A stretch of 64,000 bases of DNA from Gracilinanus agilis (Eukaryota). How positions within the stretch are numbered: position 1 is the first letter of the stretch; the number at the start of each line of letters is the position of its first letter. The stretch lies in the NCBI RefSeq assembly GCF_016433145.1, contig NC_058132.1, positions 119,126,626-119,190,625 of the forward strand, written 5' to 3'. Of this stretch, positions 1,395-61,901 are shown piece after piece. The translations under genes were made by a program, and so were the position numbers. Under the pieces are notes generated by a model. It saw nothing but the letters and a program-made list of their open reading frames with translations. It had not been told where the DNA came from and made no database searches.

Positions 1395-1593
1395 GGGGGG
1401 CTGCTGGGTAGCTCAGTGGATTGAAAGCCAGACCTAGAGACGGGAGGTCCTAGGTTCAAATCTGGTCTCAGACACTTCCCAGCTGTGTGACCCTGGGCAA
1501 GTCACTTGACCCCCATTGCCTACCCTTACCACTCTTCTGCCTTGGAGCCAATACACAGTATTGACTCCAAGATGGAAGGTAAGGGTTAAAAAA
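1395..1593 (+). mobile_element. SINE1_Mdo-type SINE inserted into a MIR
   Basis: Full head-to-tail SINE. TSD aaaaaatgaaggcatgg at about 1378-1394 and 1594-1610. The flanks join into MIR sequence (cctcatctgtaaaa...aagttcccttccagctct). Confidence 0.9.
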
Positions 1594-2257
1594 AAAAAAT
1601 GAAGGCATGGATCTCTTAAGTTCCCTTCCAGCTCTTTCATTCTAAGCAAAGATTCAGTATAGTTTCAGCTAGTCCTTTAGGTATTTGCTGAATCTGAACT
1701 AGCCTCAAAGTCAAAACACCACATTATAAACACTAAACCTAAAATTTTTAGTCACTGTACATTAATATGGACCCTCATGATAGCCTGAAGTCTGACAGCC
1801 CACTCTAAACTCTTGGTAGAAGAGCCATTTAACAGTTTGAGAATGTGATTGCAATCAGCTTCTACAGATATACCTAAAATCAAATTCTAGTTTTGTTATA
1901 TTAACTCTTTTGAAGTTAACTTATCATGCTTACTTGCTTTCTTTCCTTTTTTTTTAAATGTACCCTTGCCTTTGGTATTAGAAGGGAACCATCTTCATCA
2001 GTATGACTATAAACCATGGGATTAAACCATAGGGATGATAGGTCTCTCATCCAACTGAAACCTATCAAGTACAACCCTTTCATTTTATAGAAAAGGGAAC
2101 TGAAGCCTAAAGAAGTTAAGTGACTAGTCCAAGGTGATCCAAGTAATTCCTGTTCTTTAGTGCTTGGCATCCTGGATCTGAGTCCTGTTTGAAACTAGCT
2201 ATTTTTCCCCATGAGGTACCTGTGGACATAAGACTTAAATTACATATTAATTAATCA

Positions 2258-2345
2258 ATAAGCATTTACTAAGTGCCTACCATGTACACTGTCCTAGGTG
2301 CTGAGAATAGAAACACAAAGATTGAAGTAATTAGTGTTCTCATGG
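2258..2345 (-). mobile_element. L2 3' end
   Basis: caataagcatttactaagtgcctaccatgtac...gtgctgag is the reverse complement of the L2 terminus. Confidence 0.65.
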
Positions 2346-3551
2346 AGCTTTTATATTCTAATAACAACCTTGTTTTTCTTTCTTGACCTTTTTGTCTCAC
2401 TAGCAGCTGTGCCTTTTTTAAAAAATGAGCTGACCTATTTTTGTTATTTGACTTATCTTTTGTTTTCTGGTATTCTCATCCTAACTATATTTTTGATGAC
2501 CAGTAGTCATTTAGAAAGTATGACATAAAATAAGTTTGAACAGCCAAAAATTACAGTATAAACAATTTTAATTGATGTTGGAGAGAGTATACTCAAGTGT
2601 GTACTCTACCATGCTGCATGTTTACCTGGAATTGCTGAATTTATATAAAGCTGAAAAGAGAAATTGGAAAAGCTTGCCAATAAAATCAGGAAAATATTAA
2701 AAACTTGAACCATTAATCCAAAATGATACGGTTCATGGGATTCTGGATTTACTTCATCTCCTAAAATTTGGAGATTGGACTAGATAAACTCTGAGGACCC
2801 TTCTAGCTTTAGGACTATGATTTTGTATTCTTATGAAGTATTATTCAGTCACATTATCTAAAATGCCAACTAGGCTGTAATCTTCTTCTTCCCATCCCAT
2901 TATCTTCCTTCTTTTGTCTCTTTTGGTCATACTCAAGGTGTACTGCTCGAAAAGGGGATATATGGTAGAAAAGAAGAGGGCACAACTTTGAGTTCTTTGG
3001 GATGTGCTTTTGCCTGCTCCCAGTATTGCTTCTGGGCATTTTCCTTGCATACTAAATGTATGAGAAGAAAAAAATACCATATTTCTCTCTCCTACTTCCA
3101 TGTAAATAGAAGTGAGGCTTCTAAGAATGTATAAGAAATTCTCCCTTTTCCTTAGGTAGGGAAAATCTAGGAGTCAAAGGACATTCTTACTCCCTCCATA
3201 CCTATAAAAAACATACTTCTATTTTAGAAGGAATTAATTCCTTTGAAAAAGTTGTAATGAGGGAGTACTTATAACTCAATCATTTTTTATTTTTGGTTCT
3301 AGTCTTTTGATTTGATCTGTATCAGGACTTCCTGTCCTAGAAATTCTTTGTACACTGAGGCAGTGGCTTCAGACATTTTGAGAAGCCAAAGTGGCATAAC
3401 TTGGGACCCACTAGTGTGTGTAAGAAGCAAGAGTTGAACCCAGGTTTTCCTCCATTGCCCACTTTCTATCTACTCTGCAATGATACCTCTCATGACACTT
3501 TTAATGGCTATAAGATTGTATAGTTTGTATACTCCAACATGATCACTTGTT

Positions 3552-3751
3552 AATTTTTTGGTAAACCCTTCCTTCCATCTTAGAGTATCAATTCTTAGGT
3601 AGAAGAAGGTAGGGTAGGGACTAGGAAATTGGAGTTAAGCAACTTTCTTGTCCAGGGCCACACAGCTAGAAAGTGTCTAAGGCTAGATTTGAACCCAGGT
3701 CCTCCCAACTATAGGCCTGGTTCTCTTTCTAGTGTATGCCCTAGCTGTCTC
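3552..3751 (-). mobile_element. Diverged marsupial SINE
   Basis: aaacccttccttccatcttag...gccacacagctagaaagtgtctaaggctagatttgaacccagg...ctagctgtctc. Confidence 0.8.
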
Positions 3752-4069
3752 TTCAACTAATTTTAAGTGAATCTAGTTACAGTAGTAGTATTAAATGCAT
3801 CTAGTGAATTATTTCTCTGTAATAGAAAAAAATATTCTTCCATTTTCATGCAATGCGTTCCAGCTCCTTTCCCATATTACAAAAATTACAAATACCAACA
3901 GCATATTTTGATAGCTTTATTTTCATATGCCCAAGTGGATGTTTTTTATCAGAAAATTTAAACAAATCTGATATTTCACCACTTGGTGGTGCTCCATGAC
4001 ATGAGTATATGGTAGAAGAAATAGTAAGTAGTCACTAATTTGGGAGACATTGTTAATGTAGTCAATTTA

Positions 4070-4287
4070 TTTATTTATATATATATATTTTAAACCCTTA
4101 CCTTCCGTCTTGGAGTCAATACTGTGTATTGGCTCCAAGGCAGAAGAGTGGTAAGGGTAGGCAATGGGGGTCAAGTGACTTGCCCAGGGTCACACAGCTG
4201 GGGAGTGTCTGAGTCCAGATTTGAACCCAGGACCTCCTGTCTCTAGGCCTGGCTCTCAATCCACTGAGCTACCCAGCTGCCCCCTCC
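4070..4287 (-). mobile_element. SINE1_Mdo-type SINE, low divergence
   Basis: Full length; 12-bp TSD gtagtcaattta at 4058-4069 and 4288-4299. Confidence 0.92.
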
Positions 4288-11758: not shown

Positions 11759-12008
11759 TTTGTTATTGTTCAGTCGTTTTGTTTGTGTCTAATTCTATAA
11801 TACTTCATTTGGGGCTTTCTTGGCAAGGATACTTGAAAGGTTTGCTATTCCCTTTTCTGGTTCATTTTGTAGATGAAGAAACTGAGATAAAAAGGGGATA
11901 AGTGACTTGCCCAAGGTCTCACAGCTAGTAAGTGACTGAGCTCAGATTAAATTTAGAAAGAGGTATTCCTGACTTTAGACCTGGTGTTCTATCCACTATA
12001 CCATCTTG
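11759..12008 (-). mobile_element. MAR1-type (RTE-tailed CORE) SINE
   Basis: gttattgttcagtcgttt...ttcttggcaaggatacttgaaaggtttgctattccctt tail plus the core gatgaagaaactgag...aagtgacttgcccaagg. Confidence 0.8.
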
Positions 12009-12344: not shown

Positions 12345-12605
12345 GGGGCAGGTAAGTGTATAGTGGGTAGAGTGCTGAACTGTAGTCAAAAAGAGTCAAA
12401 AAGATCTGAGTTCAAATGTTATCTCGGATACTTAGTAACTGTTTACCCTGAACAAGTCTCTTAACCTTATTTGCCTCGGCTTCCTCCTCTATAAAATTAA
12501 AATGAGCTGGAAGAAAAAATGGAAACTGGTCTAGTATCTTTGCCAAGAAAACCCCAGATGGGATCACAAAGAGACTAAAATAACTAAAGTGACAACAAAC
12601 AACAA
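12345..12605 (+). mobile_element. MAR1-type SINE
   Basis: ggggcaggtaagtg...atctgagttcaaatg...gaagaaaaaatggaaactggtctagtatctttgccaagaaaacccc...acaacaaacaac. Confidence 0.8.
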
Positions 12606-20606: not shown

Positions 20607-20674
20607 ACTCATAAACTACTGAAGAAAATCATGAACTAGCATAGTTTCATGATTTTCTTCAGTAGTTTATGAGT
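20607..20674. repeat. Perfect inverted repeat, 29-bp arms, 10-nt spacer
   Basis: ACTCATAAACTACTGAAGAAAATCATGAA (20607-20635) is the exact reverse complement of 20646-20674; spacer CTAGCATAGT. Confidence 0.98.
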
Positions 20675-51655: not shown

Positions 51656-51852
51656 GGACTACATACCAGAGCCATGATTCTGGAACAGATTTGTCTTTTC
51701 CATGGATTTTGAATGTACTTGATTTAAAAGCATTTGATTTTTACAAAGTGATTGAAAGCTTTATCAAGGCAGAAGCGAGTTTGACAAGGGAAATGATAAA
51801 ACACTTAGAACGTTGTGAACATCGGATCATGGAATCACTAGCATGGCAATCA
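51656..51852 (+). CDS. RB1: RB1 exon 17 (197 nt), [65 protein letters not shown]
   Basis: ttttag|GGACTA...CAATCA|gtaagt. End of pocket A; length 197. Confidence 0.98.
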
Positions 51853-58479: not shown

Positions 58480-59900
58480 CTGTATTAAGTATCTATTGCC
58501 AGGCAATGTTTTAGGTACTAGGAGTTACAAAGAGAGTGCATTCTATGCATGGAGAAAAGCCTGTACAAAAGCACAAAAATAGGAGATGGAATGTCATCTA
58601 GGAGAAATGGTAAAAAAAGCCTATTTAGCAGATAGATTTCATGAGGGAGAATAACATGCAATAAGCCTGGAAAGATAAGTTGGAGTATGAAGTTGTTAAG
58701 GACGTTAAATGTCATACAGAAGGTTTTGTATTTGTTCTAGAGGTGGAAGGTAGCTTGTGGAGTGTGCTTTAGAAATACCACTTTGACATCTATGTGAAAG
58801 ATGGTTTGGAGAATGGAGAGGTGAGAAAGAGAGGAGCAGGGAGAGACAGACAGACACAGAGAGGGAGAGTTAGAGGGAGGGAAACACTCAGTTAGGAGAC
58901 TATTACAATAGTACAATTGAGAAATGATGGAGAATGGTAGCTCTATGAGTGGGGGAAAAAAGAATGAATATGAGAGATGTCATAGACAAAGTATTGACAA
59001 GGCTTAGCAACTGATTGGATGTATGAAGTGAAGACAGCAAGGAAACAAGGATAACTTTAAGTTTTGAACCAAGGTAACTGAAAGGTTGGTGATATTCTTA
59101 ACAGAGAAAGGGAATTTCAGAAGAATGATGGATTTTAGGGGAAAGATAATGAGTTCTATTTTAGACATGTTGAGTTTGAGATACTTGTAGAACATACAAC
59201 TGAAAATAGATAATTGGTAGGGCAAAATATATACTTCAGAGACTAGGACTAGGGAGCAGTTTCCAAGGGAACAGTTAGGTAGCTCAGTGGATTTGAGAGT
59301 AAGACCAAGAGACGAGACATCCTGGGTTCAAATTTGACCTCAGGTACTTCCTTAACCCTCATTGCCTATCCCTTACCAGTCTTTTGCCTTAAAACCAATA
59401 CACAGTACTGATTCTAAGATAAAAGATAAAGCTTGAGAGAGAGACAAGGACTAGATTTCTAAACATGAGTCATCTGCATAAAAGTGATAATTGAACAGAG
59501 TTATGAAAAGAGAATTAGTAGGTTAGTAAATGAAGTACATAACCTTATTGAAGAAAATAACTCCTTAAAAACTAGAACTGACCAAATGGAAGCTAATGAC
59601 GCTATGAGACATCAAGCTATAATAAACCAAGTCAAAAGACTGAAAAAATAAAAGTATATTTTAGCTATCCTATAGGGAAAACAACTGACCTTGAATAAAG
59701 CTAACACACATTTAGATGGGAGGAGATAAACAATGATCCATCAAGAGTGAGATTAAACAGATAAAAAGAATAATGAGAGAAAGCAGTGTAATGAAAACCT
59801 AAAGAGAGAATATCTACAAGAAGAAAGTTGTTAACAGTGTCAAATACTATAGAGGCCTTGGGAAAAGATATATCAAAAAGTATACACAGTCCATACCCTG
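58480..59900 (-). mobile_element. L2 fragments interrupted by a SINE (59253-59440) and an L1 ORF1 piece (about 59500-59700)
   Basis: gagttctattttagacatgttgagtttgagatac and gagtcatctgcata are typical reverse-L2 motifs. The SINE is flanked by gagac(t/a)aggactag. Confidence 0.7.
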
Positions 59901-60383
59901 AAGGAGCTTACATTTTAATGGATGAGACAAGGTAAAATTAATAAGCATATGCAAGGTATATACAGAGTACCTGGAAGTTAGTCTCTGAGGAAAAGCTATA
60001 GTAGTAGAGAGGTGGTTTGATAAGATACTCATTTAAACCAGATTCTCCCAAGTGTTTCCAAGGAAAAACTGAAGATAAAAAATAGTTGGAAAGTAATTAG
60101 TTAATAAAAGCTAAGGCTACTGTAATAAACTCTTTTCTCTATCAAAGAAGGCAAGGCTACCACCTTTGGACTCTACTGTCATAGACCCCAAAGTGCTATA
60201 TGACAAAGAATAGCACCATACTCTGTTATAGATTAAAAAAGGATGCTGGACTAGAGAAATATGCTTATTCTTTAATAGTCTTATTCAGAAGGTCCCATTA
60301 ATCCATTTGTTAGCAGTTAACTGAGTTCTGTATTTTCCATCTTGTTTGTATTTCTATTGGATTTATCCACCTCTGATACATAC

Positions 60384-60498
60384 TGTAACATGGAAAATGG
60401 CAGGGTGGAATTCCTGCAAGATACAGGGTCAAGCCTCACCCAGAATGGCTTGACCCTGTATCTTGCAGGAATTCCACCCTGCCATTTTCCATGTTACA
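60384..60498. repeat. Perfect inverted repeat, 52-bp arms, 11-nt spacer, TGT...ACA termini
   Basis: 60384-60435 is the exact reverse complement of 60447-60498; spacer TCACCCAGAAT. Confidence 0.99.
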
Positions 60499-61901
60499 AT
60501 AGACACATAGATACTTGTTATGCACTCTATAGATGCTAATCCAATATCTGAAGTTGTGTCTTATATTTGCCTTTCCCTTGTACCTAGCCAGCATGTAACT
60601 TAATTACTTTCCTGAATCTTGCATGCTTTGTCTTCAATTTTATAGAACATTTGTGTGAGAAAAAAAATAGGCTAAAAGTAGTTCATAATTTTAAATTAAG
60701 AGATTCATGGAACAATTTTCCAATTATAGTAGACAACTTAAAATTCTTTAGGTTTCTTGCTGCCTAACTTGTAAACAAAAATCAGAACTTCTTCAGTTTT
60801 CTTTTGAAATGTCAGACTTGACAGGAAATGAACACAAAGGGGAGAAAGGCCTCTGGCTCCGAAAAGGATGTCTGGTGTGTGTTTGTGTCCTGGTGTTTCA
60901 TTAACCTCACATACTTCACATGAAAGCGTTAGTTTTTAACTTTAAAAAGATGTCAAAAAAAGTCAAGGTTTCAAGAGAGTAAAATGGCTTGAAAGACAAT
61001 GATATAGCCACACTTGTTAGTCTTTACATGCATAACTACCACTCTTATAAATGAAATAGCATATTTAATTTTCAAAATCGCATAAAGAATTGCACAAAAT
61101 AATAGTAAGTTGAAAGGAATTGCCTATATGTTGAGAGTTAAGAGTTCTAAGATCTGGTGTCAATTTTAAAATTAATGACCAGCGTGACCTTTGCAAGATG
61201 ATCTCTGGCAAGATGTATCTTCCTACAAACCTGAAGAAATGAATTTTATAATTTTTATAATGCTTTCCTAAGATATATTGCACTTTTATCTTTCTATATC
61301 CTGTGAGGTAATGAAGTTTCATTATATCTCACTTTTGTGGAAACAGTATTACCATTTTGGAACTTTTGCAATAAACATTTACTCAATTCCCACTAAATAT
61401 ATAGAACTACATACTGTTTCTTCAAGGCCTTACTCAATCTCCATTAGGAACATTTTCTTTATAATTTCAACCAATATTCTCTCTTTCTGTAGCACTTATA
61501 ATCAACCATATGGTACTGACAGCATAAAAGTTATTCTACCTTGTACTGTCTACTATAGGCACTTAATAAATGCTTGCTTGTTCATTTTCTAATTGTTACA
61601 TTTGTAAGTCATGTCTCCTAATAATATCAAAATATACTTGAGGGCTTTGGCCTTGTCATTTTGTAATATTTTTGCATACCCTGAAATATGAGGTACAAAT
61701 TTGGTACTAAAAAAGATTTGGTAAACTGAATTAATTTGCAACTCATGTAAATGTAGTTCTGTTTCAGTTACCATGTATTATCTCAGAATTTTTATATATA
61801 AGTATATATACACATGTACACACATGTATATGAAATGTATTTTTACCATGTTAAATCATTTTTACTTGGGCCTTAAGTTTCTTTTTAAAAGTGATTATGT
61901 C

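Follow-up and report, generated by a model that had tools for sequence, protein, structure and literature searches.

The 115-nt palindrome that interrupts an intron of RB1 in the 64-kb stretch of DNA analysed here (the window; organism A) is very probably a copy of a foldback-type MITE, i.e., a non-autonomous cut-and-paste DNA transposon, that is lineage-specific and present in high copy number. The palindrome thus reflects a family with thousands of copies and the recent insertion of one of them, and not a special feature of RB1. A search of the literature, with Dfam and Repbase outside its scope, found no paper on such an element in marsupials, which is not proof of novelty.

The palindrome consists of two arms and a short spacer (Table 1): a 52-mer (TGTAAC...CAAGCC) that is present once on each strand, at 60384-60435 (+) and at 60447-60498 (-), with 0 mismatches. 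This confirms the perfect 52-nt arms with TGT...ACA ends and 11-nt spacer described in an earlier note on this DNA, and 100 shuffled windows contained no match to the 52-mer palindrome (0/100). With the repeat finder, each arm reaches 55 nt and complementarity is 98% (60381-60435 / 60447-60501, 11 nt between them), and the RNA of 60370-60512 is predicted to fold into a single unbroken 52-bp stem at -105.7 kcal/mol, compared to -33.5 +/- 3.6 kcal/mol for shuffles of the same segment (z = -20 for the real sequence). With a GC content of 47.8% the element is richer in GC than its 300-nt flanks (34% and 30%), as had been claimed, and it contains no CpG. The tetramers that border it, ATAC on the left and ATAG on the right, are identical in three of four bases and read as previously stated. 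The palindrome within each arm (GCAGG...CCTGC / GGAATTCC), which had been proposed to allow branched folds, is indeed present, but the hairpin is weak, a lone arm folding at -10.3 kcal/mol vs -103.6 kcal/mol for the whole element. The sole open frame in the element is a 49-aa read-through, for which no homologue was found in a set of 5.8 billion proteins.

Table 1. Features of the window, and the insertion site in organism A and in two relatives (organisms B and D).
Feature	Positions	Strand	Evidence or sequence
Whole MITE copy, 115 nt, TGTAA...TTACA termini (very probable)	60384..60498	.	repeat search, fold, family-contig edges
Left terminal inverted repeat, 52 nt	60384..60435	+	exact reverse complement of 60447-60498
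Right terminal inverted repeat, 52 nt	60447..60498	-	0 mismatches vs left arm
Spacer TCACCCAGAAT, 11 nt, forms hairpin loop	60436..60446	+	shared with longer family contigs
Putative 4-bp target-site duplication, left copy ATAC	60380..60383	.	119-nt gain; ATAG once in B
Putative 4-bp target-site duplication, right copy ATAG	60499..60502	.	empty-site rebuild
RB1 exon, 197 nt, end of pocket domain A	51656..51852	+	Pfam RB_A E = 4.6e-26; splice sites AG and GTAAGT
Site in organism B			GATAC ATAG GCATG TAGATAC
Site in organism D			GATAC AGAG GCATA TAGATAC
Site in window (A)			GATAC ATAC [115 nt] ATAG ACACA TAGATAC

The multi-copy nature of the element is documented by short-read contigs of the same species. 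In the largest set (X1, ~3.2 Gb, which may stem from the assembly's own source sample), summed contig depth amounts to 174,393, 321,618 and 132,032 in three 50-nt bins over 60363-60515 and to 25.3 on the right flank, so that the element reaches ~10^4 times flank depth, where summed depth is a rough guide and not a copy number. A total of 2,159 X1 contigs were aligned, most of them on the element, and 1,325 fit both arms; identity to this copy is at least 99% for 504 contigs, 95-99% for 845, 90-95% for 549 and under 90% for 261. Similarity of the family contigs of organism A to the window is lost at 60383/60384 and 60498/60499, one joint starting precisely at 60384, and loose ends in X1 accumulate before 60380 (29 contigs), before 60383 (34) and behind 60499 (35). 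These loose ends are AT-rich and show a consensus agreement of only ~0.4, which implies that the flanks are unrelated genomic sequence. Element 31-mers are also present in low-coverage runs from other samples of the species (contig sets X2-X4, 80-91 Mb each), among which X3 has several element contigs at raised depth. As an order of magnitude, the family comprises thousands to ~10^4 copies in the species, and the predicted multi-copy MITE family is borne out by ~2,000 matching contigs, their unrelated flanks and the excess of depth.

Within the 64-kb window, a search with blastn-short at word size 7 returned nothing longer than 11 nt besides this copy, and a scan for TGT...ACA inverted repeats recovered only this element and one inverted SINE pair. 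Inverted pairs of marsupial SINEs (CATTTGGGGCTTTCTTGGCAAGGATAC..., TGTGTGACCCTGGGCAAGTCACTTGAC...) are located at 11806-11843 / 12523-12560 and at 1484-4196; they are long imperfect repeats, 0.7-2.7 kb apart, and not transposon TIRs. A MIR-like SINE fragment at 59800-59950 (...GGAGCTTACATTTTAATGGATGAGACAAG...) is multi-copy in all three species compared, with loose ends rich in poly(A) and a summed depth of ~500-2,100. Elsewhere in organism A, the palindromic element has also been inserted into a further copy of the SINE, directly behind the equivalent of position 59931 (joint 59931>60384). Two 22-23-mers, searched as exact patterns in contigs from viruses, metagenomes and prokaryote genomes, gave no match, and thus revealed neither copies via host contamination nor any hint of a vector.

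The lineage specificity of the family follows from two relatives, organism B (contig set X6) and organism D (X15), each represented by ~3 Gb of contigs and with flanks ~5-8% diverged from the window. In B, a contig of 1,963 nt (X6 contig 28) links 60382 to 60508 with GGCATG between them, and in D, a contig of 3,654 nt (X15 contig 9) links 60380 to 60507 with GAGGCAT between them; the element is absent from both. The check for an orthologous empty site was thus positive, as contigs of both relatives span the site without the element and leave a size gap of 115 + 4. Moreover, contig depth over the centre of the element (60414-60464) is 0 at >=80% likeness in the ~3 Gb of either relative, indicating that the family is confined to organism A's lineage. 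A search of indexed runs outside organism A with six sampled words likewise found no element words.

The same comparison provides a view of the target site. Compared to the empty site, the window has exactly 119 additional nt, which corresponds to the 115-nt palindrome plus 4 nt, and the four extra bases duplicate ATAG, present once in B. An empty site rebuilt with the right copy, ATAG, has 3 mismatches to B and D, and one rebuilt with the left copy, ATAC, has 4. The 119 nt can be split in three ways, into 115 + ATAC/ATAG (with one mismatch), 117 + a perfect TA, or 116 + ATA, the 117 + TA split carrying a C/T mismatch at the outermost base of the TIR; the 4-bp duplication is imperfect (3/4) and read from this one copy only. 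At the family junctions, a pyrimidine excess is found at position -1 (>=98 C/T-type contigs vs at most ~38 A/G-type), and ATAC is over-represented as a flank (29 contigs vs ~1-2 expected). An 8-bp duplication of the hAT type (ATACATAC / ATAGACAC, 6/8) was rejected, as the empty site leaves room for 4 nt only. Within the 5 nt that border the insertion on its right side, three transitions are clustered (ACACA in the window, compared to GCATG in B and GCATA in D), and the left duplication copy also has a G/C difference, while the 115-nt element itself is unmutated. Either a microsatellite of the (ATAC/ACAT)-like kind with a high mutation rate or error-prone repair during the insertion could explain the transition cluster at 60499-60507.

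The insertion appears to be recent. With 0 differences in 104 paired bases, divergence since insertion is below ~2.9% (95%); the probability that 104 nt stay unchanged is 0.35 when divergence is 1% and 0.04 when it is 3%. With the rate of 3.21e-9 per site per year that Gilbert et al. used for marsupials, the copy is roughly dated as young, at under ~3% divergence and < ~9 My, which agrees with an insertion that postdates the separation from B and D (~6-7% diverged pairwise). Homogenisation of the arms by gene conversion, which had been offered as an alternative to youth, is unnecessary: by simple arithmetic, ~28% of the copies would still have perfect arms if insertion had gone on at a constant pace from the species split onwards.

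The description of the element as a young, TIR-only transposon holds with regard to its age and its boundaries, but not in the strict sense of TIR-only. In 74 X1 contigs, the match extends over the left arm and the spacer through 60446 and continues with TCCAGGG... in place of the right arm, and one X3 contig reads ...CCCAGAAT + TCCAGGGTTATAG / TCCAGGGTTATAGAGACC; the arm extends at least ~30 nt further in other copies. Since the spacer is common to copies with other internal sequence, this copy looks like a centre-deleted derivative of a longer foldback element. Joints that leave out 32-71 nt around the centre (e.g., 60404>60461, 60407>60447, 60408>60480) occur in more than ten contigs with the depth of a single locus (22-35), and one arm is joined to other multi-copy sequence in X3 contigs 16 (depth 30.8) and 22 (depth 21.7). 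We infer that the family is made up of foldback elements with longer arms, from which the centre is lost, based on contigs known by alignment and not by full sequence. The proposed course of events is that a longer partner element supplied in trans a transposase that recognised the TIRs, that the target was cut at ATAG with a 4-nt stagger, and that gap repair yielded the ATAC/ATAG duplication. An asymmetric central deletion in a longer-armed foldback might have left one arm with 63 nt and the other with 52 nt, in which case the 11-nt spacer would be the remainder of one arm's continuation. Neither an autonomous partner nor a transposase was seen in the 64-kb window.

Elements of similar architecture and history are known from other systems. 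Foldback (FB-like) elements also have long inverted arms, little or no unique centre and varied central deletions; however, the arms of classical FB elements are made of internal tandem subrepeats and measure hundreds to thousands of nt, and the repeat finder detected no subrepeats in the arms here. OC1_Das_NA and other dasyurid hAT MITEs (PMC3621081, PMC4408412) resemble the family as bursts of short non-autonomous elements within one marsupial lineage, with thousands of copies and empty orthologous sites in relatives. In contrast to the element, with at most 4 duplicated nt and TIRs of >=52 nt, hAT elements have 8-bp duplications and short TIRs.

As for the enzyme that mobilised the family, the ends (TGTNR), the TIRs of >=50 nt and the 4-bp duplication tentatively suggest a DDE enzyme that is related to integrases and of the Ginger2/TDD type, a reading that is drawn from sequence features and to which we give a little less than an even chance. 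Ginger2/TDD elements are marked by TGTNR ends, TIRs of 50-180 bp, 4-bp TSDs and a preference for RTATAY targets (Bao, Kapitonov & Jurka 2010, PMC2836005). The element is similar in its ends (TGTAA...TTACA), in its TIRs (~50-180 bp in Ginger2/TDD; 52 here and longer in relatives) and in its AT-rich insertion site. A 4-bp duplication is obtained from 119 - 115 = 4 with ATAC/ATAG, though 117 + TA also fits. Differences are the target, which is CATAGG in relative B and not RTATAY, a single site that carries little weight, and the integrase-like transposase, which was not seen in the 64-kb window. The suggestion of a Ginger-type product of a DDE integrase, which is a matter of signatures only, therefore agrees with the ends and TIR length and is compatible with ATAC/ATAG, but the RTATAY preference is not matched. 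Ginger1 is excluded, as its 4-bp TSD is CCGG or CCGT/ACGG (PMC2836005) and not ATAC/ATAG. As of 2012, no Ginger2 transposons had been found in vertebrates, only SCAND3 and KRBA2 as domesticated domains (Llorens et al., PMC3575427), and the superfamilies of human repeats do not include Ginger2 (PMC5753468).

An unlikely alternative to an integrase-type enzyme is a Tc1/mariner palindromic MITE similar to human MADE1, in which case the element would occupy 60383-60499 (117 nt, CTGTAAC...GTTACAA) and have duplicated a TA. TA indeed stands on both sides of this copy (60381-60382 and 60500-60501), this duplication needs no mutation, the element itself has none, and the TA-based rebuild of the empty site is equally good (3 mismatches); in addition, the inverted repeat reaches 55 nt at 98% complementarity, and family alignments often take in 60383 or 60499. 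However, although this copy permits a TA duplication, an invariant one is not found across the family junctions: 34 + 35 contigs end at 60383 / 60499 and do not continue through TA, the joint 59931>60384 reads ...GACAAG|TGTAAC, and the junction in X3 contig 22 reads GTTACA|ACCTACATC (GTTACAA|CC), both lacking TA. Moreover, the usual Tc1/mariner ends are CAGT or of the TTAGG type, and the termini of the element are unlike them. MADE1 and other Hsmar1-derived MITEs share with the element a length of ~100 nt, an almost fully palindromic structure, thousands of copies and intronic hairpins, and the TA on both sides of this copy is another likeness, which the other family junctions do not have. In contrast to MADE1, which is primate-wide and ~50 My old, the family is young and lineage-specific, and the ends of the element are TGT...ACA and not mariner-like.

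Slightly less probable still is an origin of the palindrome from a retroviral or LTR end, i.e., a self-primed or fold-back LTR terminus that was inserted by retroviral integrase. Class I ERV integration also gives TG...CA ends and a 4-bp duplication, and multi-copy contigs with one arm on another repeat (X3 contigs 16 and 22 and the 74 X1 contigs) might be read in the same way. However, the arm-adjacent flanks in these contigs lack a polypurine tract or a primer-binding site (TGG...), no LTR starting with the arm sequence was found within the 64-kb window, and we know of no route that would bring a 115-nt palindrome to a copy number in the thousands via reverse transcription. The probability left over by the Ginger2-like, Tc1/mariner and ERV-end readings falls to a DDE transposon of unspecified superfamily.

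The host gene is RB1: the exon at 51656-51852 covers positions 129-192 of the 196 of the Pfam RB_A profile, the element sits 8,532 nt downstream of it in the following intron, and no further RB1 exon motif occurs between 51852 and the end of the 64-kb window. The location in an RB1 intron, as given in the earlier note, is therefore supported, and its designation as intron 17 is plausible, with an exon numbering that we take over from the human gene. LPAR6, in whose direction antisense transcription had been envisaged, is not visible, as the 64-kb window has no ORF of >=110 aa long enough for LPAR6 (~344 aa). Two other observations concern the RB1 introns. A second perfect hairpin, with 29-nt arms (ACTCATAAACTACTGAAGAAAATCATGAA) and a 10-nt loop, lies at 20607-20674 in an earlier intron and is unrelated in sequence to the element with 52-nt arms, and at 61035-61047, in the same intron as the element, B and D have 39-49 additional letters compared to the window, a small indel.

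For RB1, the element is most likely a neutral intronic passenger. The predicted fold leads to the expectation that RB1 pre-mRNA would carry the 52-bp perfect hairpin, and that in an antisense transcript the stem would be the same and the loop complementary, which implies no function. That the hairpin serves as a functional RNA, either as a MITE-derived miRNA or endo-siRNA precursor or as an ADAR target affecting RB1, is very improbable. MADE1 elements seeded the miR-548 family, and sub-threshold matches to miRNA models were obtained here (mir-971 as the best, 38.3 bits vs a gathering score of 53; mir-5697, 33.3 vs 50). However, no family of Rfam 15 was matched at gathering score, and the matches are of a generic perfect-hairpin kind and occur on both strands; moreover, the element is one of thousands of similar copies, and the insertion is absent from the relatives, so that nothing conserved depends on it.

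The idea of a unique local fold-back duplication (by replication template switch) or an assembly artefact, which the single copy in the 64-kb window and the perfect palindromes known as artefacts of some long-read assemblies might suggest, is practically eliminated by thousands of multi-copy short-read contigs with differing, unrelated flanks, including those of other samples, by a 1,456-nt X1 contig that spans the right junction (60473-61200) with 0 differences from the window, and by the clean empty site of the relatives that is exactly 119 nt shorter; the single-copy outcome named earlier as a refutation was thus not found.

Recent DNA-transposon activity is rare in mammals. It is possible, though on balance doubtful, that a Ginger2-type transposon entered one marsupial lineage horizontally less than ~10 My ago and that its foldback MITEs were amplified to ~10^4 copies. 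If true, this would be among very few recent bursts of mammalian DNA transposons outside bats, by a superfamily that is unreported as vertebrate repeats; OC1 and hAT-1_MEu, the cases known from marsupials, are horizontally acquired hAT elements (PMC3621081, PMC4408412). If the integrase-type signature holds, the family would bring in a superfamily that is new for mammals and represent a datable invasion. The family would also put thousands of perfect or near-perfect 50-bp hairpins into transcripts, as raw material for small-RNA and editing substrates.
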